64,000 bases of DNA from Macrostomum lignano (taxonomy: Eukaryota): assembly GCA_002269645.1 (NCBI GenBank), contig NIVC01000353.1, positions 124,001-188,000 of the forward strand. Direction: 5' to 3'. How positions within the stretch are numbered: the first letter of the stretch is position 1; every line of letters begins with the position of its first letter. Of this stretch, positions 2 through 39,415 are shown in pieces. Below the pieces are notes generated by a model. It had not been told where the DNA came from, did not search any database, and saw only the letters and a program-made list of their open reading frames with translations. The position numbers were made by a program, and so were the translations under genes.

Positions 2-790
2 CACCAGGTCCAGCCGGTCAAGCAGGTCCTCCAGCGCATCGGTGTTGGCGTTCTCGCGTCCCGCGATAAAGGGCGAGCGCTCGGACCTCCGCGGGACTGC
101 GTTCAGGTCTCCGAGCACTGCCAGCGTGTCGCGGTTTGGCACCTCTTCCAGCTGCCCAGCCAGGAAGTCGAAGAAGGCACGCGCCTCCTCGGGGTGAGCA
201 GCGGTGGGTGCATACGCGCAGAACAGCCGGATGCAGCGGGCGCGTAGTCGCAGGTCGACCCGCATCAGTCGCGGGGACAGCGAGATGCAGTGCACGCTCT
301 GCCGGAGGCGCGGTCCGATCAGTACGCCGACACCGCCCCGGCCGCGGTTGTCTGCCGACGTGTACAGGAGGCTCCAGCCGGCTCCGAGGTCCTCAGAGTG
401 GAGCCCCGGCTCGGCCACGATAGAGACCTCCTGCAGTGAGACGAGGTCCAGCTGTAGGTCGTGGGCCAGCTGGACAAGGATGGTGCGACGCCAGGGGGCC
501 TTCAGAGTTCGGCAGTTCATCGTGCCGAGTCTGAGGCGGCCTCCTGGTACAGCTGGGGCCAGATGGAGGTTGGCCTCATGGTCCCCGGCGCCACCCGGCG
601 GATCCATAGTTGAGGTAGCAGGGACTGGGGACAACAGGCGCCTGGCCGCGCCACGGAGTCGCCCTCGCCGGTTGCGCTCGCGCCGCCGCTCAGTTCGACG
701 TTGCGCGCTGCGCTGACCTCTGCGAGTCCCTGCTGTGCTGAGCTTTGCTGCCGCAGCCGAAGCGCGGCCGTCCGAGCCAACCGAGGTCAT
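2..790 (-). mobile_element. Non-LTR retrotransposon (RTE-like LINE) ORF, apurinic-type endonuclease domain; runs off the left edge
   Basis: Manual translation of the minus strand is stop-free from ATG 790 to the window edge: RLRLGTMNCRTLKAPWRRTILVQLAHDLQLDLVSLQEV...GRGGVGVLIG...LFCAYAPTAAHPEEARAFFDFL...LAVLGDLNA...LEDLLDRLDLV. It carries the GTxNxRTL, LQE, YAPT and GDxNA motifs of APE/EEP retroelement endonucleases. Absent from the ORF track, probably because no stop lies in the window. Confidence 0.88.
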
Positions 791-848
791 CCGCGGCCTG
801 ATGATCTGGCCGCGATGCCAGGAGGTGTCAGCACGATTTGCACGGGTG

Positions 849-1410
849 TGCAAATAAAATGGCTCTGCAAATAAAATGGCTCTGCAAATAAAATGGCTCT
901 GCAAATAAAATGGCTCTGCAAATAAAATGGCTCTGCAAATAAAATGGCTCTGCAAATAAAATGGCTCTGCAAATAAAATGGCTCTGCAAATAAAATGGCT
1001 CTGCAAATAAAATGGCTCTGCAAATAAAATGGCTCTGCAAATAAAATGGCTCTGCAAATAAAATGGCTCTGCAAATAAAATGGCTCTGCAAATAAAATGG
1101 CTCTGCAAATAAAATGGCTCTGCAAATAAAATGGCTCTGCAAATAAAATGGCTCTGCAAATAAAATGGCTCTGCAAATAAAATGGCTCTGCAAATAAAAT
1201 GGCTCTGCAAATAAAATGGCTCTGCAAATAAAATGGCTCTGCAAATAAAATGGCTCTGCAAATAAAATGGCTCTGCAAATAAAATGGCTCTGCAAATAAA
1301 ATGGCTCTGCAAATAAAATGGCTCTGCAAATAAAATGGCTCTGCAAATAAAATGGCTCTGCAAATAAAATGGCTCTGCAAATAAAATGGCTCTGCAAATA
1401 AAATGGCTCT
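849..1410. repeat. 17-bp minisatellite (GCAAATAAAATGGCTCT), ~33 near-identical copies
   Basis: Read directly; the 17-aa periodicity of the ORFs crossing it confirms a 17-bp unit. Confidence 0.97.
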
Positions 1411-1419
1411 TTTCCATTT

Positions 1420-1964
1420 CCAGTGGAAGACACTGGAAATGTAACAGAAATGTGACAGAGTCATTCGGGAAAATCCCCGTGTGACTGCAAGAGAGTTGGG
1501 GGATCGACTGGGCAGACCAAAAACCTCAATTCATCAAATTTTTCCTCTGCTGAAGAAGCACCTGTGTGGGCGCATCTTTGACCACGGCGACAACTTGGAG
1601 GGAGAGAAGTCCGGCGAGTTCTGATGCACGAGATTCCGCGTCGAGCTTATGCAGATGCCATCAATGTACTCTTCACGCGATGGACCAAGTGCTGCAAGCT
1701 GAGGGGTGACTTCGTCAAAAATTGTTCAATCGATGGCGATGCTGAGTAGCCGACCTTGCTGGGCTTGACTTGGTGTAACTCTGCTCCTTAACCCCTGTTC
1801 TACTTTTAGCCATATTTTTGAAGGAAATAACATTTTGTCAAAATTAAAAAAGCAATAAAACTGTAGAATAGTTATCAATTCAGTGACGCATGTTACACTA
1901 AATTCTGATTTCGCATTCAGTCTGTGGATCAATTTTTCCCACTATTTTTGGGACACCCCTCGTA
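1420..1964 (+). mobile_element. Internally deleted mariner (Tc1/mariner) transposon with right TIR
   Basis: From 1451: CDRVIRENPRVTARELGDRLGRPKTSIHQI (HTH) is fused directly to FPLLKKHLCGRIFDHGDNLEGE and, after a frameshift, VRRVLMHEIPRRAYADAINVLFTRWTKCCKLRGDFVKN (mariner C-terminus). The end 1928-1964 reads GGGACACCCCTCG-TA, a mariner-like TIR plus TA. Confidence 0.8.
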
Positions 1965-3382: not shown

Positions 3383-3778
3383 TTACTCACCGAGTCGCTC
3401 ATAGATACTGTTGGACAGGTATCCTCCGCAAGCAATTGAAGCATCTCTTAAGCAACTCTGATCGCACACTCGAGTCCTGCCATCTGCAGTGCCATATCTG
3501 CCGAAAGAATTGCCGCAGAAGCATCTACTACGAAACTGCAATCCGAAGTAAGAAAATCCGGCACAGAAAGTGTTGCAATGCTCAGGGGCTGTACCAAAGG
3601 ACCAAGAGCGTTTTCCATTTAAATCTCTATTTAATAAATAATCAACGTAGCAACCAATATACTTGAAGTTCGAGCTGACTTTATAGGTTAGAAGTTCGCA
3701 AGGTGCCGCAAAGATCAAAATGCTCACCGCTGCTACAGCCAGCATTTGACTAGAGCTATTATGATGACTTAACTGCAT
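3383..3778 (-). CDS. WSC-domain protein, copy 1 (signal peptide-like N-terminus plus one WSC domain); possible small 3' exons
   Basis: MLAVAAVSILIFAAPC hydrophobic leader, then YIGCYVD...RDL...PEHCNTFC...YFGLQFRSRCFCGN...CDQSC...CGG..SNSIY, the 8-Cys WSC pattern. The ORF end coincides with a consensus donor G|GTGAGT at 3391/3390, so the true stop may lie in a later exon. Confidence 0.85.
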   Translation of the reverse strand: MQLSHHNSSSQMLAVAAVSILIFAAPCELLTYKVSSNFKYIGCYVDYLLNRDLNGKRSWSFGTAPEHCNTFCAGFSYFGLQFRSRCFCGNSFGRYGTADGRTRVCDQSCLRDASIACGGYLSNSIYERLGE

Positions 3779-4590
3779 GGTTGAGCATGATATGCGTCTG
3801 AAGGGCGCATACATGTATTTTTACTGGGAAATTTATTTATTCAGAAGATCTATGCAACGACCAATCAGAAAGATTCCTCTCTCTCTACCTTTTATTTGTG
3901 ACACCTCTCCCCCCTTTGCCCCAGCCAATCAGCATTGCTCTCTGGCTAAGCCATGCTGCTGTTTCTGCCGTTGGTTAACTTTTATTTTGGAATCTTAGAC
4001 GTGCCCAGTTCCGGTCCCGATAGCACTAGCTCGGTAAGATACAAACGATAGATTAGATTTTAGCATTAAAGTCCAGCATTTGTGTCAATTCATTGACAAT
4101 TTGTCGTGAGAATTAACTACTTAACTTAACGTCTTAGCGATTTCCCTAAAAGCCACAAATTTATTAGGGCCACAAAGCCCTAATATCCCCATTAGTCTTG
4201 ACATCTTAAAGAATTCTCTCCGTAAGCCTTAATACGTCAGCAATTCCTCACTCCCAAGAGCATTTCAGAAATTACCCCGTGAGCCATCTTAGCAATTCCC
4301 CAATAAAGCTTTTATATGGTTGATATGACGCTACTTTCATACTGGGCATTAGGCTTCTTTCACGTTGGATGTGACGCTTCACTAACTCTTTATTTTTGCG
4401 CGTCTGTCTAAAAAATAAATATTTATTGACAAACTCCAGCCAAGGACAAGCTTCGCCGAGTATGAGGTCCATACTTCAGTCGTCATCGCTCAAGCTTATC
4501 CTCATCCTCACACTATAGAAATGCTATAATTTAGTTCCACCAGTTGCTCACTCAATAAAAGTTGTGCAGGAGGAGTTATCAAGAATATTT

Positions 4591-4992
4591 CTACTTCAGT
4601 TTTTCATGCACAAGCATGGCCCAGATGCCCCTAACCTCACCAAAAAGCCGGTTAGCAAAGACGCTGTTAGTCCATAAGCCTCCGCAGGTCACGAGGGCAT
4701 CTCCAGAGCAGGCCATGTCGCACATCCAAGTCATTCCATCAGCCAAGCCGTATTTCCCATACGCATCGCCGCAGAAGCAATGCGAAGCATATTGCAGTCC
4801 AAAATAGGCATAATTACGGCAGAAGGCGTAGCAAGTATCGGGTGTTTGATTTTTGCCGTCATTGGTCGGCCCAGTCAGGTCCCTTTTGCTCCTATTAGGG
4901 TCCACGTAGCAGCCAATGTAGTTAAAATTCGGACTGGTTCTGTAGGGCAGGAAGGTGCAGTTGGCCGAGTTGATTGAGACCGAGGATGCAGC
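4591..4992 (-). CDS. WSC-domain protein, copy 2 (5' end unresolved; spliced exon or pseudogene)
   Basis: Open frame ASSVSINSANCTFLPYRTSPNFNYIGCYVDPNRSKRDL...PDTCYAFC...YFGLQYASHCFCGD...CDMAC...CGGLWTNSVF is homologous to copy 1. An in-frame TGA lies at 4993-4995 with no ATG before the domain. Confidence 0.75.
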   Translation of the reverse strand, partial: AASSVSINSANCTFLPYRTSPNFNYIGCYVDPNRSKRDLTGPTNDGKNQTPDTCYAFCRNYAYFGLQYASHCFCGDAYGKYGLADGMTWMCDMACSGDALVTCGGLWTNSVFANRLFGEVRGIWAMLVHEKLK

Positions 4993-8871: not shown

Positions 8872-11800
8872 TTAAAGGTAGAACAGCTGGTCGCAGATCT
8901 GCGGATTCGGCTCCTGCCCGAGGCTCTGACCAACCAGGTAAGCCAATCGGTGGGCGTACTGGCAAGGGGCTGGGACTCGAATAGTGCCAGGCCAATTAGC
9001 GTACAGGTGAGTCAGTTTGTAGGTAAAAACTTGAACCGAATCAGCGTTTAATCGGGTTTCGTTTTCGTCAATGATGACATTGTAGTGCGTTGGCGTGACA
9101 GTGCCCTGCGTGGCAAGTTTTTAAGACAGTTTACACAAACTTATTTTACAGAACTAACCTCAGCTAACTTTGCTTAACTAATAGCTAATTTGATAATCAG
9201 AGACAAAATCGCACCTGTTGGGTGAACTGTGACACCAGATAGAAGTCATAATAACCCGGCATGGTTACTGTTGAGTCCACCACGGTACCTGGCAGCGGGT
9301 TGCTCAATTCCCGATTTTGCTGCTGCTGCTGCTGTTGCAGGAAAAACCGCGCGCTGATTCGCTTCTTCACGACGATCACCTTCAGGCCGGGCGGCGGCCG
9401 TCTAGCGGCGCTGTACAGCTCGCGCAGAAATACCGACACCTGCGGTGGTGCGGGTGGGACAGGTGCTGAGACATGTAGCCCAGTGGTCTAGCGAGACTCT
9501 GATGTGCCAGCGGCCCAGGCTCGATTCCAAGTGCAGTCACATTCATTTGGGGCTAATCTGGAATCTCGGCTTGGCTCTGCTCGTGCAATTAACGCCCAGC
9601 TTGAGGGCCAACCCCCAAGACACAGTGAAGTGTACATGCCTAACGATAAATAAAGTTAGGGCCGCTGTACACTCCTGTGTGAGTGTGTGCCGGTGCGTAT
9701 GACTGCGTACGTATCCGCGCGCTTGTTTGACTGCTCAGGGGAGTCGGCGGAATGGGCAGCAATGCCTCTCGCCGGTTGTGTGACAATGTCGACTAAAGTG
9801 CGCACAGGGTGCCCCGTCTTTAATAAAAAAGAGACAGGTGCTGAGACAGGTGCTGCAACACGTGCTGAGACAGACACTATTAGACATGGCACGAATCGCA
9901 CCTGAGCAAACTCGATATCCTTGACCTGCTCCAGCATGGAGTCGCTGACACCGTCTCTGTAGATGACAATGGAGGCGGGTAGGCTGCCGCCATTGCTTAG
10001 CCTGTACCTCTCCAGTGCAGCACTGAAGCCCTGTACCAGACGCTGGTGCAGCTCGGCTCTGCCACGCTGGTGCAACTCGGCTCTGCCATGCTGCATCATT
10101 GCTGCGTAGGAGTAGTACTGCGTCATCAGGGCTGGAGTTGTTGATGGGGCGGCGAGGTGTGCGTCAGAGGTTGAAGTCACTGATCGTTAGCCTACGCTCG
10201 TATCTTTGCTAAAGGTCTACCTATCTTGCAACATCCGCAATTTTCAATTATCCTTAATCTCCCATCCTCACAACATTCCAACATCCTTAATCTTCCAACA
10301 TCCTCGATCTTCAAACATCCATTATCCTCAATCCCCAACATCCTCAATCTTCAAACATCCATTATCCTCAATCCCCAACATCTTCAATCTTTAACATCCT
10401 CATTCTTCCAATGTCATCAATCTTCCAATGTCATCAATCTTCCAATTTCCTCAATCTTCCAATTTCCTCAATCTTCCAATTTCCTCAATCTTCCAATTTC
10501 CTCAATCTTCCAACATCCCTAATCTTCCAACATACATTATCCTCAATCTTCCAATGTCACAAATCTTCCAACATCCTCATTCTTCCAACATCCTTCATCT
10601 TCAAACATCCTCATTCTTCTAACATCCTCAATCTTCCAACATCCTCAATCTTCCAACATCCTTATTCTTCCAACATCCTTCATCTTCAAACATCCTCATT
10701 CTTCTAACATCCTCATTCTTCCAACATCCTCAATCTTCCAACATCCTCAATCTTCCAACATCCTCAATCTTCCAATTTCCTCAATCTTCCAACATCCCTA
10801 ATCTTCCAATATTCCCAATCTTCCCAACGCATCAACCATTGAAACCAGAGTCGCTCACGATTCAGAGAGAAGACAATGCCCAGAACCGACTGGTTATGCC
10901 GTCTGTCATGATAGGAGTCCATGCCGACCACCATGCAACCCTCGTACGGCATGCTCAGGCCCCAGGGTATGCCGCCCAGCTTGCAGCTCATCTGCAGGGC
11001 CACCCTGCTGGCCACCGTAGTCGATCTTTCGTCTGAGCTGCTCACGTTTCTGAGTGGCGAGTGACGGATTGTTGCTATGAGCTCAATAGCAGATTTGGTA
11101 CTCCTGACACTCCTGCCATAGCTACCCCTGACTCTGCTGCCATAGCTACTTTTGACTCTGCTGCCATAGCTACCCCTGACTCTGCTGCCATAGCTACTTT
11201 TGACTCTGCTGCCATAGCTACCCCTGACTCTGCTGCCATATCTACTTTTGACTCTGCTGCCATAGCTACCCCTGACTCTGCTGCCATAGCTACTTTTGAC
11301 TCTGCTGCCATAGCTACCCCTGACTCTGCTGCCATAGCTACTTTTGACTCTGCTGCCATAGCTACCCTGACTCTGCTGCCATAGCTACTTTTGACTCTGC
11401 TGCCATAGCTACCCCTGACTCTGCTGCCATAGCTACTTTTGACTCTGCTGCCATAGCTACCCCTGACTCTGCTGCCATAGCTACTTTTGACTCTGCTGCC
11501 ATAGCTAATTTTGACTCTGCTGCCATAGCTAATTTTGACTCTGCTGCCATAGCTAATTTTGACTCTGCTGCCATAGCTACTTTTGACTCTGCTGCCATAG
11601 CTACTTTTGACTCTGCTGCCATAGCTACTTTTGACTCTGCTGCCATAGCTACTTTTGACTCTGCTGCCATAGCTACTTTTGACTCTGCTGCCATTGCTAC
11701 TTTTGACTTTGCTGCCATAGCCATCCCTGACTCTCCTGCCATAGCCACCCCTGACTCTCCTGCCACAGCTACCCCTGACTCTCCTGCCATAGCTACCCCT

Positions 11801-14800
11801 GACTCTCCTGCCATAGCCACCCCTGACTCTCCTGCCACAGCTACCCCTGACTCTCCTGCCATAGCTACCCCTGACTCTCCTGCCATAGCTACCCCTGACT
11901 CTCCTGCCATAGCCACCCCTGACTCTCCTGCCATAGCTACCCCTGACTCTCCTGCCATAGCCACCCCTGACTCTCCTGCCATAGCTACCCCTGACTCTCC
12001 TGCCATAGCTACCCCTGACTCTCCTGCCATAGCTACCCCTGACTCTCCTGCCATAGCTACCCCTGACTCTCCTGCCATAGCTACCCCTGACTCTCCTGCC
12101 ATAGCCACCCCTGACTCTCCTGCCATAGCTACCCCTGACTCTCCTGCCATAGCTACCCCTGACTCTCCTGCCATAGCCACCCCTGACTCTCCTGCCATAG
12201 CTACCCCTGACTCTTCTTAGGTCTCACAGCTGTTACACAGACCGTATTCACCTGGACAGAAGACACTGGTTAAGCACAGGATTCGTGACGTAGCAGAATC
12301 TCTTAATTGCATTATACCGCTCTGCCTTAGAATTTTGTAGCAGACACCATTTTAATGCCGGGCTGCAGATTAGCCTGAATAGCCTGCACCCAGCGCTGAT
12401 CGCGATCCTGCAGTACCGGCACCATGTCAGGTTTGCCAAATCGCACGCCAAAGTTGGCCCTAAGTTGCACTAAAAGCTGTTCAACACGTTTGGCCAGGCC
12501 CTGTTGGTGTTCGATGAACAGAAACAACCATTTGTCGCAATGCACCGGAGTGTGCATTACCGACTGCCTCAGATTGGCGTCCCAATTTGCCATATCGGTG
12601 GAATACTTTAGCTGGAATGGAATGGAAGGTGTGACTTGCTTGTTTCGAGTCAATTTGAATATTGCAGAATGTGCATGAATTCGCGGAATCGATCCAACTG
12701 GTAATTTGATCGCTGAGTTGCTACTGAGCTGCAGTTTTCTGCCCTAGGGCCAGTGAAAATGAGGATCTGATCCCACTGCACTCACCGACAATCGGTCCAC
12801 CCTCGGAGAGGACATTAAAACCTGCTCAGGAGGCAGCCGCCTGCCGTTGACGTGCACCAACTCCGGTCGAATCTCCACACCGTATCGGGCCGAGCGCTGC
12901 TGCGAGGCTTGATTGCCAGCCATGTCATTCGCGAACTGCATCAGCCGGTTGTACCGAGCCCTCGGCCTCTGCCTGACGATGCTGTTTTTGTCCGTAATCA
13001 ACTGGCGGTCCCCGAGCATCTCGACGGTCAATCCGGTCATGATGCACAATTCCGGCGGTATCAGACTTTTTGGGGCCTGTTGAAATAAAACTGTTAATAT
13101 AAATAAATATTCACAATACGGTGACATGTCCCACAACCGGGGTCCACGAGAATTAACCCGCAGACGAATTGCCCATCCGAGGTTTGACCGCAATGCTTAG
13201 TACGTCTTAATACAGAGACTTACCCGATCAAACCGTTTCGATGGAAACTGTATACTAAATGCTGATTTTCTTGTAGGTTTCCATTTCTATGCGCATAATA
13301 AAGGGGTACGTATCAGATACACCAGTGGGCTATTAATTCATGCGTATGCCATGTCGCTTTGTCCCATACAGGGGTGTCGCCATGGATTTTATGGTGGGGG
13401 ACAAAGCCAAGAGTTCAACATGTACTAAATTTGTACTACATGACTAAATTTTGGCACTTATTTTGGCACCGCAGGCACTCCTTTTAGCGCCGCAGGCACT
13501 CATTTTGGCGCCGAAGGCGCTATATTTTGCCGCCTTAAAGAAAAATTATTGATTACCACAACGCTAAATGCGCCAAAAGCGCCAATACCGTACGCGGGCC
13601 CGCACTCGTACACCCGCTCACACAAACAAATATAGCGCATGACAAAAAACAAGCGTGCAGTGGTTGTACCTGGCCGCGACCTTCCTGACCCCGACGACGC
13701 GGAACTGGCATGAGCATCGGCTGGCTAGCATCCTGGATCTGATATCCGTACCTTGTTCTATAGTACTCGCCAATAGTGATGCTGCGTAGTTCATTCGTAG
13801 CCGGATCTCTGTATTCAAATTCGGTGAAGACATTTGCCTCCCAATCAATATCGTTGATGCGGAATTTACGGTTATTGTTCAAGCGCATCATGACGCTTTG
13901 GCCAAATAATGCGTCATTGAAGTATTGGATCAAATGGTCTTTGTTCACCTGCGCCTGCTCGTACATATAATCCAGAACAGTGTATTGGTGAACCACTTCG
14001 AACAGCAAGTCAACATGCAGCAGAGGGAATTCGGGCTCCTCGGAGGGCACCACGGTGGCATAGAAACCGGGCCACATCTGCAATGGTAAAATGATTGCAG
14101 CTTCCTACAGTTCAAATTGAAATATTCAGTTAGGAAGCCAGATAAAAGTGAAGTAACGTAGTCTGCAATAGATACAATATTTTAGCACTTGATTAGCAAA
14201 TAGCTATCAACGCCCACCCCCCGTTGTGGTGGCAACAAAGAAAGGAATACAAATTTTTGAATAATCTACATTGTTTGTTATTCCATTCTGCGGCCTAGTT
14301 GGCACTGAAAGCTTTCAATTTAATCATAGATACGGAAATCAGGCTTGCGAGACTGAAATGTTTCTGTCTATGGTCGACACTCGCTGGCATAGCGGAGTTC
14401 AATTTAATCCTGGGGGGCATCAATTTGATCATTCTAATCATATAATGTTAGATATCCAGTGCTATAACACAGTTGTTTACTTATCGTTAAGAAACACTGA
14501 AACCAGACCTACACAATAAAAAATAGAAACATTTCAGTCTCGCAAGTCTGATTTCCGTATCTATGATTAAATTGAAAGCTTGCAGTACCAACTAGGCCGC
14601 AAAAAGGAATATTTGTGACGATTGTTTGTTATCTTAAAGAAAATGATGCTTGAAGTAAAAAAGCCTTCTTTTAAGCCAGGACTTGACCCTAACTCTACCC
14701 TCCCTTTGATTCTTGGCCTACCAAAAACATTCCCAATTGACCATTGGCATCTCAGAAACTCGTTCGCAATGAGTCTTGACAACTCAGCAATCCTCTGCTC

Positions 14801-16851
14801 TCAATGTACACTTTGTGCCTTGGGGGTTGGCCCTCATGAGTTGTGAATCACACAACAACACCGAGTCCCATAAACATGAGAATGCTCACCGCCAGACGAG
14901 AATTAGCGAGTGTAATCTCTCTGTCCGGATAAAAGTAGTTTCGCTGCACCTGCTGCATGCCGAGATCCTGCTGCGCACTAGCAATGAGCACATTCAGCAG
15001 GTGCAAATACTCCGGGCTGTTGTGAAGCACCGGGCCAATCTGTACGATGGTCACTTCGCCGTGCCATCGACCAGCTGTCGCTTCGAAATGCACGCCCTCC
15101 GGTGGCGCCTCCAGCGGCTGAGGCGTGTACAGGATGCCACCGTCATAGATAAATGCGTCTGGCAGGCGGCCGGAGTCTTGGAGGACCTGCGACGATTAAA
15201 ACAAAATAATGGAATAATATTAATTTCCTTAGATTTCTTTTGTTAAATTTCAATTAAGAGTGACTCAAAAAGCCACCTCTTGCATATGATGCCATTGATA
15301 TAGGGCGCCCACCAAGGAGATCTAGCGCGCCCACCAAGGAGATCTAGGGCGCCCACCAAGGAGATCTAGGGCGCCCACAAAGGAGATCTAGCGCGCCCTG
15401 TAGGGAGATATAAGGCGCCCACCAAGGAGATCTAGGGCGCTTACCAAGGAGATATAGGGCGCCCACCAAGGAGATCTAGGGCGCCCACAAAAGAGATCTA
15501 GCGCGCCCTGTAGGGAGATATAAGGCGCCCACCAAGGAGATATAAGGCGCCCACCAAAGAGATATAGGGCGCCCGCCCACCAAAGAGATATAGGGCGCCC
15601 GCCCACCAAAGAGATATAGGGCGCCCGCCCACCAAAGAGATATAGGGCGCCCGCCCACCAAGGAGATACAGGGCGCCCACCAAAGAGATATAGGGCGCCC
15701 GCCCACCAAGGAGATATAGGGCGCCCACCAAAGAGATATAAGGCGCCCGCCCACCAAAGAGATATAAGGCGCCCGCCAAGGAGATATAGGGCGCCCGCCC
15801 ACCAAAGAGATATAGGGCGCCCGCCCACCAAAGAGATATAGGGCGCCCGCCCACCAAAGAGATATAAGGCGCCCGCCAAGGAGATATAGGGCGCCCACCA
15901 AGGTGATATAGGGCGCCCCACCAAGGAGATATAAGGCGCCCACCAAAGAGATATAGGGCGGCCGCCCACCAAAGAGATATAGGGCGCCCGCCCACCAAAG
16001 AGATATAGGGCGCCCGCCCACCAAAGAGATATAGGGCGCCCGCCCACCAAAGAGATATAGGGCGCCCGCCCACCAAAGAGATATAGGGCGCCTGCCCACC
16101 AAAGAGATATAGTGCGGCCGCCCACCAAAGAGATATAGGGCGCCCACCAAGAGACAGAAACTGAACTTGAAAGACTGAGCCAGCCTAAGACTAAACATCC
16201 AAATTCGCTATGTAGATTTTTAACGAGTGAATAAACATTTGTGCTACAAGTCTGATAAGTGACGATTGAAAAGTCGTTTTCTTGAGTAATGCTCTGTTCC
16301 AATGGCCAAATATTGTAAGTTAAACAGCCAAGGCTTACTTGTTTATTGAATGATTTAAACTGCCAACACTCACCTGCAGCCGAAGCTGCTTGGACTCGAG
16401 CACCGGTATGAATAACACCTTATTTTGCATTGCCTGGAAATTTGTAGATACGCTCAGGCGAATGTTGTTGCTAATCAGAGCAACCGGTTCACCGCTGACT
16501 CCGCGAGTCAGCTCCACGCCCGGCGGTCGGACGTCGGCGATGCGATAGCGAAGCAGCTTCCTGGACAGGCCGCCGCGCTCGTTGTCGTGGCCACCGAGAC
16601 GGGCGAGCTCCATTCCTTGGGCCAGGCGGTCAACTTCTTCACTGCCACCTTCGGTGCCTTGAACGGCTGGAGCTGCGGCGGCGGCTGCTGCTCCTGGCTG
16701 AGCCTCATCTGCCGGAGGCTGAAGCTGCATAGGCGGTTGCGGCTGCGGCTGTTCGTCTTGCCGAGACACAGGTGGCGCTTGTGTGGGCTGCGCCGCCCTG
16801 CCTCGAGCCCGGCCACGACCGCAAGTGGCTACTGCTGGCTGCTGTTGCTGC

Positions 16852-16908
<57 letters not shown>

Positions 16909-16934
16909 GTTTGTTTTTGCTCTTGTTGTGACAT
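8872..16934 (-). CDS. piwi: PIWI-clade Argonaute, ~930 aa, 8 exons; apparent 2-nt frameshift at ~12345
   Basis: Exons (-): 16934-16374, 15186-14890, 14077-13670, 13076-12786, 12611-12252, 11049-10859, 10131-9902, 9439-9215, 9105-8872; counting these gives nine segments, all bounded by AG/GT and phase-compatible except the internal shift in 12611-12252. Motifs: N-terminal GRGRARGR; IYDGGILY; MWPGFYATV; PAZ ([24 protein letters not shown]); MID Y-K-Q-K (ERYNAIK, NQC, MSCKLGG); PIWI tetrad D (VGMDSYHD), E (GRAEL), D (YRDGVS), H (VPAPCQYAH); terminal LFYL*. Confidence 0.93.
10230..10825. repeat. Degenerate ~17-bp minisatellite (CATCCTCAATCTTCCAA) in a piwi intron
   Basis: Read directly; lies between the predicted exons 11049-10859 and 10131-9902. 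Confidence 0.9.
11098..12214. repeat. 24-bp minisatellite (GCCATAGCTACCCCTGACTCTSCT), ~46 copies, in a piwi intron
   Basis: Read directly; 8-aa periodic ORFs (AMAGESGV). Confidence 0.96.
13369..13535 (+). mobile_element. Truncated MITE of the family at 30208-30987
   Basis: Starts CAGGGGTGTCGCCATGGATTTTATGGTGGGGG and contains GGCGCCGCAGGCACTCATTTT units, both shared with the element at 30208. Confidence 0.7.
14279..14611. mobile_element. Foldback/MITE with 87-bp terminal inverted repeats in a piwi intron
   Basis: Arm 14279-14365 matches the reverse complement of 14525-14611 with 5 mismatches; the spacer is 159 bp; TTTGT flanks both ends. Confidence 0.8.
15300..16150. repeat. GGCGCCC-rich minisatellite (~22-26 bp variants of AGGGCGCCCGCCCACCAAAGAGATAT) in piwi intron 1
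   Basis: Read directly. Confidence 0.93.
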
Positions 16935-17410: not shown

Positions 17411-18165
17411 TTGGAAAGCAAAGCAATGGCTGTCCAACTGCAACTGCCCCCACCTGAGCCATTGGATGTCAACTGTGAACCTCACACACTCGCTTTGCGC
17501 TGGGAAGACTGGTCATCGCAATTCTTGTGCTTCATTCAGGCCGCAAAGAGCTGCCCGAACTGTAGCAAACAGCTGAGCAACACCGAAGACACCATCAAGT
17601 CACTCCACAAGTCATTCAAGGACCACTTCACCAATTGCAACAGTATTGTGTTCTCCAGGTATGAATTCTGAAACTGCAAGCAGCAGCCCGACCAGAGCAT
17701 TGACAAGTGGGCCTGCATGTCCAAGCGGAACTTAAGAGACCGAGTGCACACCCTCGATGATCAAAGGCGGCAGGACCCGGAGAGCTTTCAGAAGTCTACC
17801 AAGCGACGTTGAGGTATTCTGTCTGGCTACAGACAAACTGCCGCTACTAACAATCTCAATCAATGGCAAGCAACTGGAAGCCCTTGTCGACAGTGGGGCC
17901 AACTGCAATGTAATCGACATGACGAGCTTTCAGGAGATCAAGGCTGCTAAAATGCCACTTTTGCTGCCAACAAGGCGGCTTTATCCTCTTGGCTCTTGGT
18001 CGCCCCTGGAAACTGTTGGCCGGGCTAAGCTCATGGTCAGCGTCTGCGGCTCGAAGAACATGGTTGACTTCACTGTGGTGCACAACCCAAGGCGTCACCA
18101 TCGTGGAAAGGGCCATGAGTGAGAAATTCGGGGTACTGCGAGTTGGGCGGAAAAGAATTTTCTTT
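17411..18165 (+). mobile_element. Degenerate Ty3/Gypsy LTR-retrotransposon gag-protease relic
   Basis: Gag-like LPPPEPLD...WEDWSSQF..FIQA and RYEF*NCKQQPDQSIDKW, followed by a retroviral aspartic protease motif INGKQLEALVDSGANCNVI. Stops and frameshifts are present, with no RT or integrase. Confidence 0.72.
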
Positions 18166-23264: not shown

Positions 23265-26200
23265 GCCAGTTCAACCAGATCCCGCCGATCCAATGTCTTT
23301 GCATCGTTATATCGCCGACACTCTGGAAGATAGCGAAGATGAAGATAGACAGCTTCAGAAGCAGCAGCAGCAGCAGCAGCATAATGCTGATGAGCCTGGA
23401 GTTGCTAATAACGACTATCCATACTACCAAGTAAGTTTAGCATCGGTTTTGCTGCTCCAGTGATCTACTGTAAGGTTTATGTCTACTGCAGTGGCACTGT
23501 ATGAGTCACTGAAGGTACTGGATATCAATGATTTCATTCAATACCTTACACAGGATCGTTACAACCAGCAGCAGCAACAGTATCCAGACGACCAGCAGCA
23601 GTACCCAGGAAACTATCAGCAGTACCCAGATGATAATCAGCAGTACCCGGAGCATCAACAATACCCAGACGACCAGCAGCAATACCCAGCCGATCCGGAG
23701 CAGCGCTTCTCTGAATTAGTGGAAGCCGAAGCCGAGCAGCCGCCAATTCCGGAGGGTCGCAAAGGCGGCGGCGGCCTACTTGGTCGCCTATTCTCGTCGT
23801 TTCGCAATTCAAAGCGTAAGACTTCGCAGAGGCAGCAACAGCGGCCGCAACAGCCGCAGGGAGTTCCTAGCGACTCCGCTGAGCAACAGCCGGGCCTAGC
23901 TGAGCAGGGCAAGTGGCGCTCAAATCCGAGCATGTTCAATGCTAACGAGAATGCCACGCCTGGTAATACGCTGGATCCTAGATTGCCGCCAGGATCTATG
24001 CAACAGCAGCAGCAGCTTCAGCCGCCGCAACCGCAACAGCAGCGTCTGATGCAGGCTGGTGTTAGAACAGTGCCGGACACTGAGGTTCGCGTCATTCTAC
24101 TGGATGGTGAAGAGATTGGCGTACCGCTGCCTAGAAAAGCCACGGGAGCGGAGCTAATGGCGCGAGTTTGCGAACACATCGACGTTCAAGAGACTGATTA
24201 TTTTGGCTTGACTTATGTTGACGCCAAGGAACGCATGTGGTTTTGGTTGGATAACGAGAAGAAAGTTCTTAAACAGCTTAAACATTGCGATAACAGGCTG
24301 TTGAATTTCCAGGTTTGTGTTGAATTTTCTGCATGAAAAAAAGTGAAAATATTCTTGACTCGCCTACTTATCGCAGTAGTCTAATATGCGCGTATGCATC
24401 CATTTCTTCAAAACTTCAACTCCTTTTGAGGTTCTCTACGTTCGGCAAACGTTGTAAACAACGATTTAAAATCGTGCTTTTGTCGACTGCTGAGGCTCTC
24501 GAGGAGTTTTGTTCTTAGTTTCACACAGGATAAACCATGAATTGTCTTCTTTACGTATGACCCACTATTATAGAGTTTTATCTTTATAATTTAAGGCTTC
24601 AGATCGCAATTAAGTTTCTTCTAACGTTGAGACTATCCGCATTCGACCTCTAAATCACCGAGATGCACGATAAAAACACTCCTGGCAGGCGTAGATGGAT
24701 TCTATTTGGGAGCAAAAATCTTGAAAAATACAAGCTGGTGTACATTTGAGGATTAGGGTATATTTTTGTTATTATTAGTGCTATTGGATTATGAAATTTA
24801 TCATAATTTTTTTACCATTATTAGTAATAAAATTATACTCCTAATCACAGAGTTAAATATTTTACTGTATTATAATAGAATGTTAGTTGAGACATTTTCT
24901 TGCTGACTTGGACTTTGATTCAGGTCGAGAGCCCCAAAGGGGCTTGCTTATCCAGTTTGGATTTTTTTGCTCTAAGCTGACGTATTCGCTTGCATTGTCC
25001 GACTGCTCCCTGGGCTGCCCTTCGCTTACTAAACTTGTTTTCAAATATGGATTAATATGCTGATGTTTATCATAAATAATCAAAATCTATGTCAAAACAA
25101 TTCATTACTCTGACAGGTCAAGTTCTATCCGCCTGAGCCGAACATGCTATTCGCTGATGTGACTCGCTACCAGCTGTGCCTGCAGGTTAGGCAGGACATT
25201 TACACCGGCAAGCTGCCTTGCACCTGGGTTACCCAAGCTCTGTTAGGCTCATTTCAAGTACAGTCTGAACTAGGCGACTACGATCTAGCTGAACACGGCG
25301 AACTTGACAATATCGATTATTTGCAAAATTTCGAATTCGTGCACAATCAAACGTCCGAGTTGGTTCGCAAGATAGCGGAGCTGCACCGCGGTCACAAGGG
25401 CGTCACGCCTGAGGTTGCCGACCTGCGCTATTTGGAAACTGCTCGCCGATTAGAATTCTACGGCGTTGACTTGCATCCGGCTCGCGATCTGGATGACGTT
25501 GACATTACTATTGGCGTCTGCTTTGGCGGCGTCCTGGTGTACAAAGATCGCATGAGAATATCCCGATTCGCTTGGCCGAAAATATTGCGCATCTCCTATA
25601 GGAAGAATCTGTTCTATTTGAAGATTCGCTCCGATCTGTACGACAACGTTGAAGCTGTGGTCGGATTCAAGATGATGAATCACAAGTGAGACTGGTCAAT
25701 AATTGTGTCATAAATTATTAGTTATAAGAATTCAGAATCCCAAGAGCTGTTTGGTATCCCAAGAACTGAGAATTCCTTTAGTTGACTCATTGTTGCTTCT
25801 AGTCTAGACCATGGCGTCCCGCAGAGCCTCTCTATCCGGCCCTCGGTTCTTTTGGAACTTCAAAATAGCAATCTGGCCCGCTCAATGTTTATATCTCTTC
25901 TCAGCCCTCTTCTCTCTAATCTCCTCTCTACTCTCTTCCTATCTCCTCTTCTCTCCTCTCTCCTCTCCTCTCTCTTCTCTCTCCTCTCTTTTCTTTCCTC
26001 TCCTCTCTTCCCTTCTTTCCTCTCTTCGCTTCTCTATCATCTCTCTCCTCTCTTCTCTCCTCTCTTCTCTCCTCTCTTCTCTCCTCTCTTCTCTTCTTTC
26101 CTCTCTTCTCTCCTCTCTTCTCTTCTCTCCTCTCTTCTCTCCTCTCTTCTCTCCTCTCTTCTCTTCTCTCCTCTCTTCTCTCCTCTCTTCTCTCCTCTCT

Positions 26201-28790
26201 TCTCTTCTCTCTCTCCTCTCTTCTCTTCTCTCTTCTCTTCTCTCCTCTCTTCTCTCCTCTCTTCTCTTCTCTCCCCTCTTCTCTCCTCTCTTCTCTTCTC
26301 TCTTCTCTCCCCTCTTCTCTCCTCTCTTCTCTTCTCTCTTCTCTTCTCTCTTCTCTCCTCTCTTCTCTTCTCTCTTCTCTTCTCTCCTCTCTTCTCTCCT
26401 CTCTTCTCTTCTCTCCTCTCTTCTCTCCTCTCTTCTCTCCTCTCTTCTCTCCTCTCTTCTCTCCTCTCTTCTCTCCTCTCTTCTCTCCTCTCTTCTCTCC
26501 TCTCTTCTCTTCTCTCTTCTCTTCTCTCCTCTCTTCTCTTCTCTCTTCTCTTCTCTCCTCTCTTCTCTCTTCTCTTCTCTCCTCTCTTCTCTCCTCTCTT
26601 CTCTTCTCTCCTCTGTTCTCTCCTCTCTTCTCTCCTCTCCTCTCTTCTCTCCTCTCTTCTCTCCTCTCTTCTCTCCTCTCTTCTCTTCTCTCTTCTCTTC
26701 TCTTCTCTCTTCTCTTCTCTCCTCTCTTCTCTCTTCTCTTCTCTTCTCTCTTCTCTTCTCTCCTCTCTTCTCTTCTCTTCTCTCTTCTCTCCTCTCTTCT
26801 CTTCTCTCCTCTCTTCTCTCCTCTCTTCTCTCCTCTCTTCTCTTCTCTCCTCTCTTCTCTCCTCTCTTCTCTTCTCTCTTCTCTTCTCTCCTCTCTTCTC
26901 TTCTCTCTTCTCTTCTCTCCTCTCTTCTCTCCTCTCTTCTCTTCTCTCCTCTCTTCTCTCCTCTCTTCTCTTCTCTCCTCTCTTCTCTCCTCTCTTCTCT
27001 CCTCTCTTCTCTTCTCTCTTCTCTTCTCTCCTCTCTTCTCTTCTCTCTTCTCTTCTCTCCTCTCTTCTCTCCTCTCTTCTCTTCTCTCTTCTCTTCTCTC
27101 CTCTCTTCTCTTCTCTCCTCTCTTCTCTCCTCTCTTCTCTCCTCTCTTCTCTCCTCTCTTCTCTTCTCTCCTCTCTTCTCTCCTCTCTTCTCTCCTCTCC
27201 TCCTCTCCTCTTCTCTTCTCTCTCGTCTCCTCCTCTCCTCCTCATCTCCTCATCTCACTCTCCTCTTTTCTCTCTCCTTTATCTCCTCTCTCTCTTCTCT
27301 CCACTCCTCTCTTCTCCTTTATTCTCTCGCCTCTTTTTTCTCTTATCTCCCTTCTCTCTTCTTCATTCCCTCTCCTCTCTTCCCTCATACGACCTGCAGT
27401 CATTATCTACGTTCTCTATCCGTCCCTTGAGGTAAAAAAGTTTTCCGACTCCTGCTCTAGACACAATATCGTGCGACAAACCGTGAATCGAACCTGTACA
27501 TATCTAAGCTACTTTGGCTCTTAATCTCATGCATTTAAAATATTAAGATTTCCCCTCATTCATTAATTGATAATCCAAGGTGGGCCAAACGTTTGTGGAA
27601 GATCGCCATCGAGAATCACGCATTCTTCCGTCTGAAAGAGGCCCAACTAGAGAAATCGGGCAGTCGCAGTTCGCTAAATTTCATTCGCGGCAATAGTAGC
27701 CACCGATTCTCTGGCCGTACGATGCATCAGTACCGAACTGAGGGCGGCACCCTGCGCCATTCTGGCACATTCGATCGTTCCTTGACTAAACGCATGTCGG
27801 CCAGCCTTCCCAGTCTGAAAGGCTCCCAGTACGGCTCGTTTCATAGTTTAAATCGGCTGCATCCGCGAGATATGCGACCGCAGGCTAATAGCGGCCGGGG
27901 TCGCGGCGGAGTTATCGGCGGTAGTAGTCGGGCTCTCGCTTCAAGCGGCGGCGGTGGCGGCAGCGGTGGCCAGCCAATGATGATGATGGCGCGCACTGGT
28001 AGCGTTAGTATTCTGCCTACTAGCGCGTTTAATAGGCCGTCGGTGAGTCTATATATTGATCTGTGAACTTCGATGTTCTTAGGTTGTGCTACACAAGCCC
28101 TGTAGCAGTGATTTGGTGACAGGCACTGGTAGCGGACCTAGTGGAGTGACAGACGCTAGGATCAGTCTTAGTGGAGTGACAGACGCTAGGAGCAGTCTTA
28201 GTGGAGTGACAGACGCTAGGAGCAGTCTTAGTGGAGTGACAGACGCTAGGAGCAGTCTTAGTGAAGTGACAGTCGCTAGGAGCAGTCTTAGTGGAGTGAC
28301 AGACGCTAGGAGCAGTCTTAGTGGAGTGACAGACGCTAGGAGCAGTCTTAGTGGAGTGACAGACGCTAGGAGCAGTCTTAGTGAAGTGACAGACGCTAGG
28401 AGCGGTCTTAGTGGAGTGACAGTCGCTAGGAGCGGTCTTAGTGGAGCGACAGACGCTAGGAGCGGTCTTAGTGAAGTGACAGACGCTAGGAGCAGTCTTA
28501 GTGGAGTGACAGACGCTAGGAGCAGTCTTAGTGGAGTGACAGACGCTAGGAGCAGTCTTAGTGGAGTGACAGTCGCTAGGAGCGGGAGTGACAGTCGCTA
28601 GGAGCGGGAGTGACAGTCGCTAGGAGCGGGAGTGACAGTCGCTAGGAGCGGGAGTGACAGTCGCTAGGAGCAGTCTTAGTGGAGCGACAGTGATAAATTA
28701 ATAATCAATATCTATAATAGTTATTTTAAATCTAAAATATCTTACTTGCAGAGCCGCGCAACGTCAAACGCAAGCGATGATCTGCTGTAG
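22085..28790 (+). CDS. Band 4.1/EPB41 (coracle-like) FERM plus FERM-adjacent domain protein, ~985 aa
   Basis: Exons (+): 22085-22979, 23201-23430, 23554-24312, 25117-25685, 27580-28042, 28752-28790, all phase-compatible with AG/GT ends. FERM motifs: VRVILLDG, VCEHIDVQETDYFGLTY, VKFYPPEP...TRYQLCLQVRQDI..GKLPC, QSELGDYD, YGVDLHPARD, FAWPKILRISY, KRLWKIAIENHAFFRL; FA motif HRFSGRT. Confidence 0.9.
25895..27400. repeat. ~1.5 kb polypyrimidine/polypurine (CT-rich) tract in FERM intron 4
   Basis: The core (~26040-27220) is almost exclusively C/T, built from CTCT(T/C)-type 5-12 bp units. Confidence 0.96.
28135..28690. repeat. 30-bp minisatellite (AGTGGAGTGACAGACGCTAGGAGCAGTCTT) decaying to 21-bp units
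   Basis: Read directly; gives the open frame SGVTDARSSL repeated. Confidence 0.93.
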
Positions 28791-35500: not shown

Positions 35501-37430
35501 CATGCATCGGGGATTGGGGGATTAGAATCGCAGGAATTATGGGATCATGCATCGGGGATTGGGGGATTAGAATTGCAGGGATTATGGGATCATGTATCGG
35601 GGATTGGGGGGATTAGAATCGCAGGGATTATGGGATCATGCATCGGGGATTGGGGGATTAGAATCGCAGGAATTATGGGATCATGCATCGGGGATTGGGG
35701 GATTAGAATCGCAGGAATTATGGGATCGTGCATCGGGGATGGGGGATTCGAATTGCAGGGATTTGGGATCATGCATCGGGGATGGGGGATTAGAATTACA
35801 GGGATTTGGGATCGTGCATCGGGGATTGGGGGGATTCGAATTACAGGGATTTGGGATCATGCATCGGGGACCTGACCACGATTCCTATTTTACCATCAGG
35901 CTACATCGACGAAGAGGAAGATTCAAATTCGGCTCCGACGCCGGAATCGGCTAGCGACAAGGACAAACCAGTCGATGGTGTAGTTGCCACGGCTGCAGGC
36001 GACTCGAACACAAATAGCAACGGTAGCAGCGGCAATAGCGGCTTGTCCGACTCGCAGCGGCACCAATTAAAGCACCGGGAACTGTTCCTGTCGCGGCAAG
36101 TTGAAACTCTGCCGGCCACTACTATTCGAGGAAAGTGTTCGGTGACGCTGCTGAACGAGACGGAATCGTTAATGTCTTATCTGAATCGGGAGGACGCGTT
36201 CTATTATACGCTAATGTACGACAGCTCGCAGAAGACTCTGCTAGCCGACCGAGGCGAGATCCGGGTTGGCGGGCGCTACCAGGCCGAGGTGCAGCCGCTG
36301 CTGGCCCAGGGCGAGTCAGATGGTCGAGAGGATTCGGCCAGCTTAGAGGAGCTGGTCTGGCGTCCGGACAATGGACTGCAGAGTAGCGATATAGATAGGT
36401 AATGATCAGCTAATAGGGACTGCAGGCAGACGGAAGACTTATCTACTGTTTAGAATTGCCTTTTGATCTTAATCATATAGTATAATCGTGGCTCAGCCTC
36501 AAGAGGTTCGCTTGTTAATTAATCCCAGTTAAGTATAGTTTCTTAATCTTCATTGAGAAGCCGGCCCTTAATCCGCATGAAAAAATTGCCATTTAAATCC
36601 TATTCATAGTAGTATTGTGCAAATTAAAATCGGTTATCTATTAACAAATTAAAAAATGCCGCTTAATACCCATTAAGAGTCGCCACATATCCATTAGGCA
36701 TGGCCCATAATCCATTAGGCATAGCCCATAATCCATTAGGCATGGTCCATAATCCATTAGGCATGGTCCATAATCCATTAGGCATGGTCCATAATACTGC
36801 ATAGAGCGCACTCCCATACTCGCGCCAGATACCTGCTGGTGTCCCGCGCCGTTGGCACGCTGGCCCGCGCCATGGACGCCAGTAGCGCCACTCGCCAACC
36901 TGGCCTTGGCCTGGCAGCCGCCTCCGCCGGTCGCGACTGCACTCAGGCGCACGCCTACAAAACTCTGCACTCGAATGGCTACGATTTAGGCCGAGCATTC
37001 TGCGCTTTGGTTAGCGACGCCGGGCCGTTGCTATGCCGAGACGAGCTCGAGGATTGGTCGGCCGGGGAGAGCAACCTGTTCGAGGAGGCCATGGAAAAGT
37101 ACGGCAAAGATTTTCACGATATTCGACAAGATTTTCTGCCGTGGAAATCGATGAAAGCAATTGTGGAGTATTTCTATATGTGGAAGACTACGGATAGATA
37201 TGTGCAGCAGAAACGGCTGAAGGCTGCGGAGGCTGAGCGGAAGCTGAAGCAGGTTTGTCTACATCAGATCTATTTATAGACAGATCGGTTTAGATTGATC
37301 ATATACAAATATTTGCTTAGAGGCCTGCTGGGCACCCTGGCGCAACGCCTTGATGACCAGCGCTGAGGCAATTCTGGCCATTCCGCTGACTCCTGACTCC
37401 GCTGGCCTCGGTAGAGTAGATGGATAGATT

Positions 37431-37472
<42 letters not shown>

Positions 37473-37561
37473 TAGATAGATTGATTGATTGATAGATAGA
37501 TTGATTGATAGATAGATAGATTGATTGATAGATTGATTGATTGATAGATTGATAGGCAGAC

Positions 37562-37595
<34 letters not shown>

Positions 37596-39415
37596 ATTGA
37601 TAGATAGATAGATAGATTGATTGATTGATAGATTGATTGATTGATAGATTGATAGATTGATAGACAGATTAATAGATAGATAGACAGACAGATTGATTGA
37701 TTGATTGATAGATTGATAGATTGATTGATTGATAGATTGATAGATTGATAGACAGATTAATAGATAGATAGACAGACAGATTGATTGATTGATTGATAGA
37801 TTGATTGATTGATAGATTGATAGATAGATAGATTGATTGATTGATAGATAGATAGATAGATTGATAGATTGATAGATTGATAGATTGATTGATTGATAGA
37901 TAGATAGATTGATTGATTGATTGATTGATAGACAGATTAATAGATAGATAGACAGACAGATTGATTGATCGATTGATAGACAGATAGATAGATATGCAGA
38001 TTATTAAATAGCAGTCTGTCATCAGCGTTACTAACTGAGTCAGCAGCTATGATAGAAAACCGCTAACCCTCCCCCCCAAGGTGTACATTCCCAACTACAC
38101 GAAGCCCAACCCGGCCGTGCTGTACAATCGCCAAGACACGGCTGGCGCCAGCCGCGGCTGCGAGAGCTGCTACACGACCAGCCCCGGCGGCCAGTGGTAC
38201 GCCTGGGGCCCGCCGCACCTGTCCTGCCGCCTGTGCACCGCCTGCTGGGCCTATTGGAAACGGTACGGCGGTTTAAAGAGCGCCACCAGATTAGAGAAAG
38301 CTGTCGCCTCCGGAGCTGTCGGCGGCGGCTCATCGGCATCGATGGGCGGTGTGCACCGGTGCACCGTGGCCGGCTGCGAGAAGGAGTTCCGCCTGCGGCC
38401 TCAGCTAGTCCGGCATCTGGCCGCGGCGCACAATCTAGACGAGTCTAGTATAGGCAATTTGAGCAAAGCTAAAGCCGTCAAGAGTATGCTAATGTCCGCT
38501 AATGTTACTACTAGACTGGCCAGGCGCCTGTGCTCGGACCTGCTCAAGCTCAGGCGATTAGCTCGCCGACCATTCGATTCGCGATTCGACGCTAAGCCGG
38601 CCCTGAAAGAACTGCCAAATCGGTATTCGTCTGCTGGTAATAAATCAGATTTATTAGCCAAGCAGCTGAAGCCGAGCTGCGCAGCCTCCCTGACTGTCGA
38701 TCAGCTGGACAGCCTGCTGACTAAAATCTGTCCGAAGCGTGACGGCGACAGTTTAACTAACGAATATTCGGATTTGTTAAGCCGCGACCGAGCTTCGGTG
38801 CTGAAGCCCAGTCCTAGGCCGAGCGCTTTCCCAACTCCGGATTTGGCTAAGCGCCAAGAATTTCATCGTCAATTGGACGAGCAGCGAGCTGCTGTCGCGG
38901 CCGCCGCTGCCGTTGCCGTTTCTTCAGCCGCTCCGGTGGTGTCCAATGGCGGCGGCAGCGCATTGAACTTCCTGCTGCCGCAGAAGCGTTCAGCAGCGGC
39001 AGCGGCCGCAACCAATGGTTCCAGCGGTCAGCAGCAGCAGCAGCAGCTCGACTCGTCTCTGGGGGTGCCGGCGGCCAAACGGCCGGCTTTGAAGGCCGCC
39101 GCGGCTGCTAAATATGTTCAACAGCAGCAGCAGCAGCAACAGCAGCAGAGCAATGGCTCATTGCCATTGAAGCCGTCTGCCAATTCCGATTCCGATAGCA
39201 ATTCTGCCGCTATCGCCGCCCCTAATCCAGCAGCCAGCGCCGCCGAAGAGCTGTTCGTCTATCGAACTAAATCAACTCGTTCTCACCTCACTGGTCAACA
39301 GCTGCGCAAAGCTGGTAGGCGGCCGTTTAAATTAGTGCCGAACTCTGCCGTTGCCAGATCGTTGCCTAATGGAGACGGCGCCTCTGTGCCTGTTTCTGCC
39401 AAGTCTGGCGTTTAA
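32498..39415 (+). CDS. MTA1: Metastasis-associated protein (MTA family, NuRD subunit): BAH, ELM2, SANT, GATA-type zinc finger; ~815 aa
   Basis: Exons (+): 32498-32525, 34631-34792, 35900-36398, 36829-37252, 38081-39415, phase-compatible and with no internal stop. Motifs: [115 protein letters not shown]...CRLC..CW.YWK.YGGLK. The symbol denotes the family, since invertebrates typically have a single MTA1/2/3 co-orthologue. Confidence 0.95.
33457..33771. mobile_element. Aged hAT-like MITE in MTA intron 1, containing a nested 156-bp palindrome (33504-33659)
   Basis: Ends CAGTGGTGCAACCAG / CTGGTTGTGCTATTG match 11/15 (all transitions); flanks TTATTATT / TTACTCTT match 6/8; the inner arms match 61/63. 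Confidence 0.7.
33810..34550. repeat. 23-bp minisatellite (CTATCCCTGCTACCTCCCCTGAT) in MTA intron 1
   Basis: Read directly. Confidence 0.93.
35300..35870. repeat. 44-bp minisatellite (GGGATTTGGGATCATGCATCGGGGATTGGGGGATTAGAATCGCA) in MTA intron 2
   Basis: Read directly. Confidence 0.93.
36690..36795. repeat. 21-bp minisatellite (CATGGTCCATAATCCATTAGG) in MTA intron 3
   Basis: Read directly, ~5 copies. Confidence 0.88.
37415..37995. repeat. Compound GATA/GATT/GACA microsatellite in MTA intron 4
   Basis: Read directly. Confidence 0.95.

Follow-up and report, generated by a model that had tools for sequence, protein, structure and literature searches.

In Argonaute proteins, the glutamate finger (E1013 in KpAGO, E637 in HsAGO2 and E512 in TtAgo) is the fourth catalytic residue, which must reach the D-D-H centre for cleavage, and its movement completes the catalytic tetrad (reviewed in PMC10772731). 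From the free-living flatworm Macrostomum lignano, only three PIWI genes, Macpiwi1, Macpiwi2 and Macpiwi3, have been recovered as full-length transcripts, together with 'PIWI-like gene fragments' (Zhou et al. 2015, PMC4604429), and a role in PIWI-interacting RNA (piRNA) silencing and stem-cell maintenance has been demonstrated for Macpiwi1 (PMC4604429). Here we analyse a stretch of 64,000 nucleotides (nt) of the M. lignano genome (assembly GCA_002269645.1, contig NIVC01000353.1, positions 124,001 to 188,000 of the forward strand; hereafter the window, with positions counted from its first letter), the minus strand of which carries a nine-exon gene of a fourth, uncharacterised and unannotated PIWI paralogue family of this species. 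In exon 7 of this gene, the codons around the catalytic glutamate are doubled. The 48 bases involved are a genuine, inherited, in-frame tandem duplication, and it is somewhat more likely than not that they arose by slippage and were passed on to several copies of a redundant PIWI paralogue that was recently inactivated or is losing its function.

An in-frame tandem duplication at the catalytic glutamate

The duplication consists of two head-to-tail units of 24 base pairs (bp) at 10040-10087, which on the plus strand read ACGCTGGTGCAGCTCGGCTCTGCC (10040-10063) and ACGCTGGTGCAACTCGGCTCTGCC (10064-10087) and match at 23 of the 24 positions, with no indels. The minus strand is open through both units and encodes GRAELHQR twice in tandem. 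The sole difference between the units, A at plus-strand position 10075 versus G at 10051, gives TTG versus CTG, both leucine codons, so that sequence and reading frame agree with the initial annotation of the locus as an in-frame 24-bp duplication with a single synonymous difference. Tandem Repeats Finder places the repeat at 10040-10093 (period 24, 93% matches, no indels) and counts 2.2 copies because the hexamer CAGCAT directly upstream of the first unit resembles the unit end CAGCGT (5 of the 6 bases match); the coding strand across the duplication reads CAGCAT[GGCAGAGCCGAGTTGCACCAGCGT][GGCAGAGCCGAGCTGCACCAGCGT]CTG. Allowing up to three mismatches, the unit occurs at these two sites only in the 64-kb window, and it has no match in any of 100 dinucleotide-preserving shuffles. 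No antisense feature was seen in the list of plus-strand open reading frames (ORFs). The possibility that the 24-bp unit is an intron was considered and rejected.

Equal-length, near-identical units in head-to-tail order, together with the CAGCAT/CAGCGT microhomology at the junction, are found here as they would be after slippage or unequal exchange. Microhomology at the junction is the pattern expected of slipped-strand duplication.

Three M. lignano gene models in UniProt (A0A1I8GTA4, A0A1I8J3X4 and A0A1I8JI51) are 93-100% identical to the exons of the window gene, and each of them has this duplication too, with Arg replaced by Cys in the first unit: the codon at the end of that unit (10064-10066) is CGT, Arg, in the window, whereas all three database models have Cys. 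Two of these sister models also differ from the window at about 3% of the N-terminal and PAZ residues. Given the Arg-to-Cys change and this divergence, the sister models stem from different sequences, and the duplication is therefore older than the divergence of the copies. The view that the repeat is not a simple exact stutter is thus borne out twice, by the base at which the units differ and by the presence of the duplication in the sister models.

The distribution of the Cys residue is itself incongruent: A0A1I8GTA4, with no other difference from the window protein, has the Cys of the more divergent copies. This could be due to a CpG site that mutated more than once, to conversion between the units or to an allelic difference.

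Among the surveyed PIWIs, the insertion is confined to one family

Compared with the solved PIWI structures, the region is a 9-residue insertion, of which 8 residues come from the duplication and one is also present in Macpiwi1; every solved PIWI shows a 9-residue gap exactly over the repeat, for example, MIWI QDRGQ---------ELVDGLKVCLQAAL. In a MAFFT alignment of 106 PIWI segments, the 8 inserted columns are filled only by the window protein and the three sister models, and the loop length at the finger is constant in the 102 PIWI representatives outside the family of the window gene. In the family of the window gene, the first catalytic Asp motif lies 80 residues from YRDG, compared with a mode of 71 and a genuine range of 69-77 among the PIWI representatives.

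When 1.84 billion cluster representatives were searched exhaustively without a profile, the Macpiwi1 cluster came out as the nearest relative outside the family. Macpiwi1 is 46% identical to the window protein over 821 aligned positions and has one unit, ...QYYSYSPIVKGGKAELHNRLEVGFNLAL (GKAELHNR). The comparison with paralogues, which the initial annotation had put forward as a check, accordingly finds the nearest of them single-copy, and the duplication is therefore derived. The remaining sequence-level statements of that annotation stand as well. With one copy, the segment aligns without a gap from Q to the AAL of the canonical PIWIs; the other copy adds 8 amino acids and a second Glu, seen as the 8 inserted alignment columns and two Glu codons (Table 1). 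The downstream Glu has the canonical spacing (E, ten residues, AAL) and falls in a column that is at least 90% conserved in an alignment of 60 proteins, and the upstream Glu keeps the usual spacing of the family to the preceding strand.

For the fold, AlphaFold2 was run on A0A1I8GTA4 (60-sequence alignment), in which both the MID domain and the last exon are missing. The resulting model has a mean predicted local distance difference test score (pLDDT) of 83.5 and a predicted template modelling score (pTM) of 0.81. It contains a strand at residues 515-523, a segment with pLDDT below 50 at 527-533, which is the first copy, and a confident helix from residue 541, right after the second copy; apart from one short helical turn, the upstream copy is predicted with low confidence and shows no regular structure. 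The downstream Glu would keep the canonical register and would be the one in the active site, although its placement in the model is not independent of the input alignment, which already put this Glu in the conserved column. The upstream copy is probably an extra, disordered stretch of the loop. By analogy with the studied Argonautes, a longer loop could matter for slicing because the finger must reach the D-D-H centre.

The host gene is a PIWI-clade Argonaute

The gene that carries the duplication (Table 1) has canonical GT/AG splice sites at 16 of 16 positions, and its assembled coding sequence is 2794 nt long, that is, 3n+1. In the conceptual protein, Pfam recognises PAZ (E 9.6e-19, residues 321-453) and Piwi (E 2.8e-73, residues 608-916) in the canonical order. 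Among solved structures, PIWI proteins (MIWI, EfPiwi, Siwi, MILI and Drosophila Piwi) match with E values of 1e-68 to 1e-49, compared with 1e-27 for human AGO2, and the top 20 structural matches of the AlphaFold model all belong to the PIWI clade. By both sequence and fold, the gene lies within the PIWI clade, nearer to it than to the AGO clade. The D-E-D-H tetrad is complete, with one extra Glu; these are residues read from the sequence and imply nothing about activity. The N-terminus starts with MSQQ and a poly-Gln run followed by GRGRARGR (16797-16820, minus strand). Arginine-glycine/alanine motifs at the N-terminus are sites for Tudor-protein binding.

Identity with the described genes of M. 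lignano was considered and rejected. The gene differs from Macpiwi3, in which the finger region has another sequence and a single Glu (P0117 cluster; Supplementary Figure 1 of PMC4604429), and it is neither Macpiwi1, to which it is 46% identical, nor Macpiwi2, which is 80% identical to Macpiwi1. A second Piwi locus for comparison was looked for in the 64-kb window and was not found. As a separate observation, the PAZ motif xLTxYNNKTYRIDDIDW (13841-13894, minus strand) has three near-invariant residues altered (T to M, Y to N and Y to F); Macpiwi1 has a change at only one of these sites (Y to H).

Table 1 Features of the PIWI paralogue gene in the window (position 1 is the first letter of the window)
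Feature	Position	Strand	Details
PIWI-clade Argonaute gene	8875-16934	minus	whole gene, nine exons
Exons 1-5	16934-16374, 15186-14890, 14077-13670, 13076-12786, 12611-12252	minus	
Exons 6-9	11049-10859, 10131-9902, 9439-9215, 9105-8875	minus	
(CAA)n microsatellite, exon 1	16843-16929	minus	poly-Gln of ~24 residues before GRGRARGR
Intron 1 minisatellite	15297-16154		26-bp unit x36
Exon 5	12252-12611	minus	MID domain; 360 nt, flanking phases need 359 or 362
Intron 5 minisatellite	11099-12214		24-bp unit x46
Exon 6	10859-11049	minus	first catalytic Asp (VGMDSYHD; codon 10917-10919)
Intron 6 minisatellite	10223-10824		17-bp unit x35
Exon 7	9902-10131	minus	PIWI domain; duplication and second catalytic Asp (IYRDGVSD; codon 9953-9955)
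CAGCAT directly upstream of first unit	10088-10093	minus	5/6 bases match unit end CAGCGT
First GRAELHQR in protein	10064-10087	minus	Glu codon 10076-10078; Leu = TTG
Second GRAELHQR in protein	10040-10063	minus	Glu codon 10052-10054; Leu = CTG; canonical spacing to next helix
(CAG/CAA)7 poly-Gln, exon 8	9317-9337	minus	PIWI domain; +5 residues vs solved PIWIs
Exon 9	8875-9105	minus	catalytic His (CQYAHRL; codon 8950-8952); C-terminal ...LFYL, then stop

A frameshift in the MID exon and incomplete gene models

The length of exon 5 does not fit the phases of its neighbours. Homology follows one frame up to ...QPGIKM and then continues in the next, with the 5'-phosphate-pocket motif RYNAIK...NQC...CKLGG still recognisable. 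The change of frame lies within 12344-12353 (ATTAAAATGGTGTCTG) and corresponds to a +1 frameshift or to a deletion of 2 or 5 bases; a premature TAA follows at 12327-12329, 7 codons past the last homologous codon. As assembled, the window copy therefore has no in-frame MID domain with a 5'-phosphate pocket (Y...K...Q and the CKLGG lysine). The frameshift is either a true inactivating mutation or a consensus error.

All three sister models skip exon 5, with weak alternative junctions that keep the frame, and all three lack exon 9. Two of them share a reading of exon 4 that is out of frame, and one reads exon 1 out of frame as well. No full-length model of the window gene was found in the database, and a search of 5.8 billion proteins with exons 5 and 9 returned nothing more than 68% identical to either. 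This targeted search and the exhaustive search of representatives were used in place of the first, word-indexed negatives. The Logan assemblies are uninformative on expression, given that the well-expressed Macpiwi1 cluster also has no Logan members.

A repeat-rich background and the proposed origin of the duplication

The introns of the gene contain three long minisatellites (Table 1) with units of the same size class as the exonic duplication, and the poly-Gln run in exon 8 is a second slippage-type insertion in the coding sequence. The 24-bp duplication would have arisen by slipped-strand mispairing or unequal exchange between the imperfect 6-bp direct repeats CAGCAT and CAGCGT; both the gene and the genome are dense in tandem repeats with units of 17-26 bp. 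With such minisatellites in the introns, a purely mutational explanation is available. Elsewhere in the window, a tandem array of a 23-bp unit extends over 6.9 kb (51645-58584, about 305 copies, 91% matches) and explains why the sequence at 52-58 kb is AT-rich and strongly AT-skewed.

Evolutionary status of the duplicated copy

The duplication adds 8 residues and a second Glu to the predicted loop carrying the glutamate finger, and most likely it is neutral or merely tolerated in a redundant paralogue, because the MID exon is frameshifted, the sister copies have frame defects and no full-length model has been found. An adaptive change of the slicing mechanism is improbable. The suggestion in the initial annotation that the doubled finger alters slicer activity would be hypothetical, and the context of the gene (the frameshift, the skipped exon 5, the lack of close database proteins for exons 5 and 9, its absence from the three full-length PIWI transcripts and the minisatellites) weakens it.

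Several observations weigh against a gene in decay. Apart from the one frameshift, about 931 codons are intact, there is no other stop codon, and all 16 splice sites are canonical; the gene keeps its D-E-D-H residues, RYNAIK...Q pocket motif and N-terminal RG repeats, and its protein still ends in LFYL. Next to the frameshift are short runs of A4 and GTGT, places where consensus errors occur, and a long-read consensus error could account for it. Word-indexed protein searches have patchy recall, and a first search of this kind missed even Macpiwi1; missing annotation does not prove missing expression. Counted at sites conserved among 131 other PIWIs, the divergence of the window gene is not significantly accelerated compared with Macpiwi1 (35 vs 24 unique changes, p = 0.15), with 7 vs 4 changes at 62 sites conserved to 90% or more. 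Among the sister copies, the 211 residues of the PIWI domain have 1-2 changes, compared with about 12 in 330 in the N-terminal and PAZ part, and this near-invariance of the PIWI domain among the copies could reflect continuing constraint. Relaxed constraint compared with a functional paralogue, as expected of a pseudogene, was not found, so that any loss of function would be recent. A divergence similar to that of Macpiwi1 implies purifying selection over most of the history of the gene, during which it was clearly functional.

The next most likely reading, although less likely than not, is a gene that is functional to this day: the frameshift in exon 5 would be a consensus error, the lengthening of loop L2 would be tolerated, the downstream Glu would serve as the normal finger, and slicing would be roughly unchanged. 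The intact splice sites, the otherwise open frame, the retained tetrad and pocket motifs, the level of conservation, comparable to that of Macpiwi1, and the nearly invariant PIWI domain of the copies all fit such a gene, as do the canonical register of the second Glu, the low confidence of the first copy in the AlphaFold model and the location of the frameshift at the short A4/GTGT runs. Less easily accommodated are the three separate database models that avoid exon 5, two of them with further frame problems, the lack of any close database protein for exon 5 or exon 9, and the absence of the gene from the PIWIs recovered as full-length transcripts. Furthermore, the invariant loop length in the 102 PIWI representatives suggests that insertions at this site are normally selected against.

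We give little credence to the alternative that a functional gene has an adaptive doubled finger: lengthened and with two Glu residues, the loop would alter the manner or timing with which the finger enters the active site, so that slicing might, for example, be slower, faster or dependent on a cofactor. In its favour, no surveyed PIWI outside the family has the insertion, which falls exactly on the catalytic Glu and is kept in every known copy, and movement of the finger is what completes the tetrad in Argonautes (PMC10772731). However, neither expression nor selection on the insert supports adaptation, the single synonymous difference between the units is uninformative on selection, the first copy has Cys in place of Arg in the sister models, the gene carries a frameshift, and the local mutational background accounts for the event without selection.

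Finally, that the duplication is an artefact of assembly, either a consensus stutter or merged haplotypes of alleles that are in truth single-copy, as the initial annotation had allowed, is scarcely credible: long-read assemblies of a genome as repetitive and recently duplicated as this one are prone to error, but the duplication recurs in A0A1I8GTA4, A0A1I8J3X4 and A0A1I8JI51, all with the Arg-to-Cys change and two of them about 3% different elsewhere, and the one-base difference between the units is not that of an exact stutter.

If the preferred reading of a slippage-derived insertion in a decaying copy holds, as is the more likely case, the locus is of modest interest, as the record of a fourth, unannotated family of PIWI paralogues in a flatworm used as a stem-cell model and as a sign that the tandem-repeat mutagenesis abundant in this species, with units of 17-26 bp, reaches coding exons, even an active site. 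There is a slim chance that the frameshift is an assembly error and the gene is expressed, in which case this would be a natural Argonaute with a finger loop longer by 8 residues, two candidate catalytic Glu and altered plugging, and as such a natural variant for studying the gating of slicing. Should the protein be produced, it alone among about 100 surveyed representatives of the PIWI family would have an insertion at the catalytic glutamate, and it might reveal the slack that the finger loop tolerates and which side of the loop sets the register.

Other features of the window

Downstream of the Piwi gene on the minus strand, two ORFs (3386-3820 and 4594-4992) encode one WSC domain each (Pfam E 5e-14 and 2.5e-18) and are probably exons of one gene. 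Other recognisable coding sequences are exons of a FERM-domain protein (FERM_N, FERM_M, FERM_C; 23479-25689, plus strand), an MTA-like chromatin protein (SANT/Myb, GATA finger, MTA_R1; 35806-39415, plus strand) and a TPR-repeat exon (48506-49006, minus strand). Two transposon remnants were identified, an ORF for an Exo_endo_phos endonuclease of the non-LTR retrotransposon type, which is joined to a tandem array coding for AEPFYLQSHFICRAILF (2-1525, minus strand), and a short fragment of a retroviral-type aspartyl protease (17757-18122, plus strand). A pyrimidine-rich (C/T on the plus strand) low-complexity block of about 1.6 kb (25811-27435; GC skew -0.68, AT skew -0.70) gives rise to long spurious ORFs on both strands.

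Comparison with described PIWI and Argonaute proteins

Macpiwi1 (CAQ03958.1 / A0A1I8JF89; Mlig034222) shares with the window gene the domain order, a similar N-terminus (MSQQ...GRGRARGR) and the finger motif QYYSY...G[KR]AELH[NQ]R, with a single additional residue ahead of the Glu in both. Unlike the window gene, it has one unit, no poly-Gln insertions and an intact MID exon, and it has transcript-based NCBI gene models, whereas for the window gene no full-length model was found. Its cluster includes, along with CAQ03958.1, several NCBI PAA models. Macpiwi3 (ALD16252.1 / KR132204) is, like the window gene, a divergent PIWI of M. lignano, but its finger region is ATQRHGQEILDSMRVIVQSQIAKY, with one Glu, and its P0117 cluster has NCBI models of its own.

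The PAZ and PIWI domains, the DEDH residues and the C-terminal motif of the solved PIWIs (Siwi 5GUH, EfPiwi 7KX7, MILI 7YFY/9IJ0, MIWI 9S0Z and Drosophila Piwi 6KR6) align with those of the window protein, and it is on solved PIWIs that the AlphaFold model superposes best (template modelling score 0.59-0.74, query-normalised). Aligned with the window protein, all of these structures lack 9 residues at the duplication and 5 at the exon 8 poly-Gln. In the alignment, the glutamate finger of the Argonautes corresponds to the duplicated Glu. The known fingers have a single Glu, whereas the predicted loop of the window protein is longer by 8 residues and has two, and any effect on slicing would be hypothetical.

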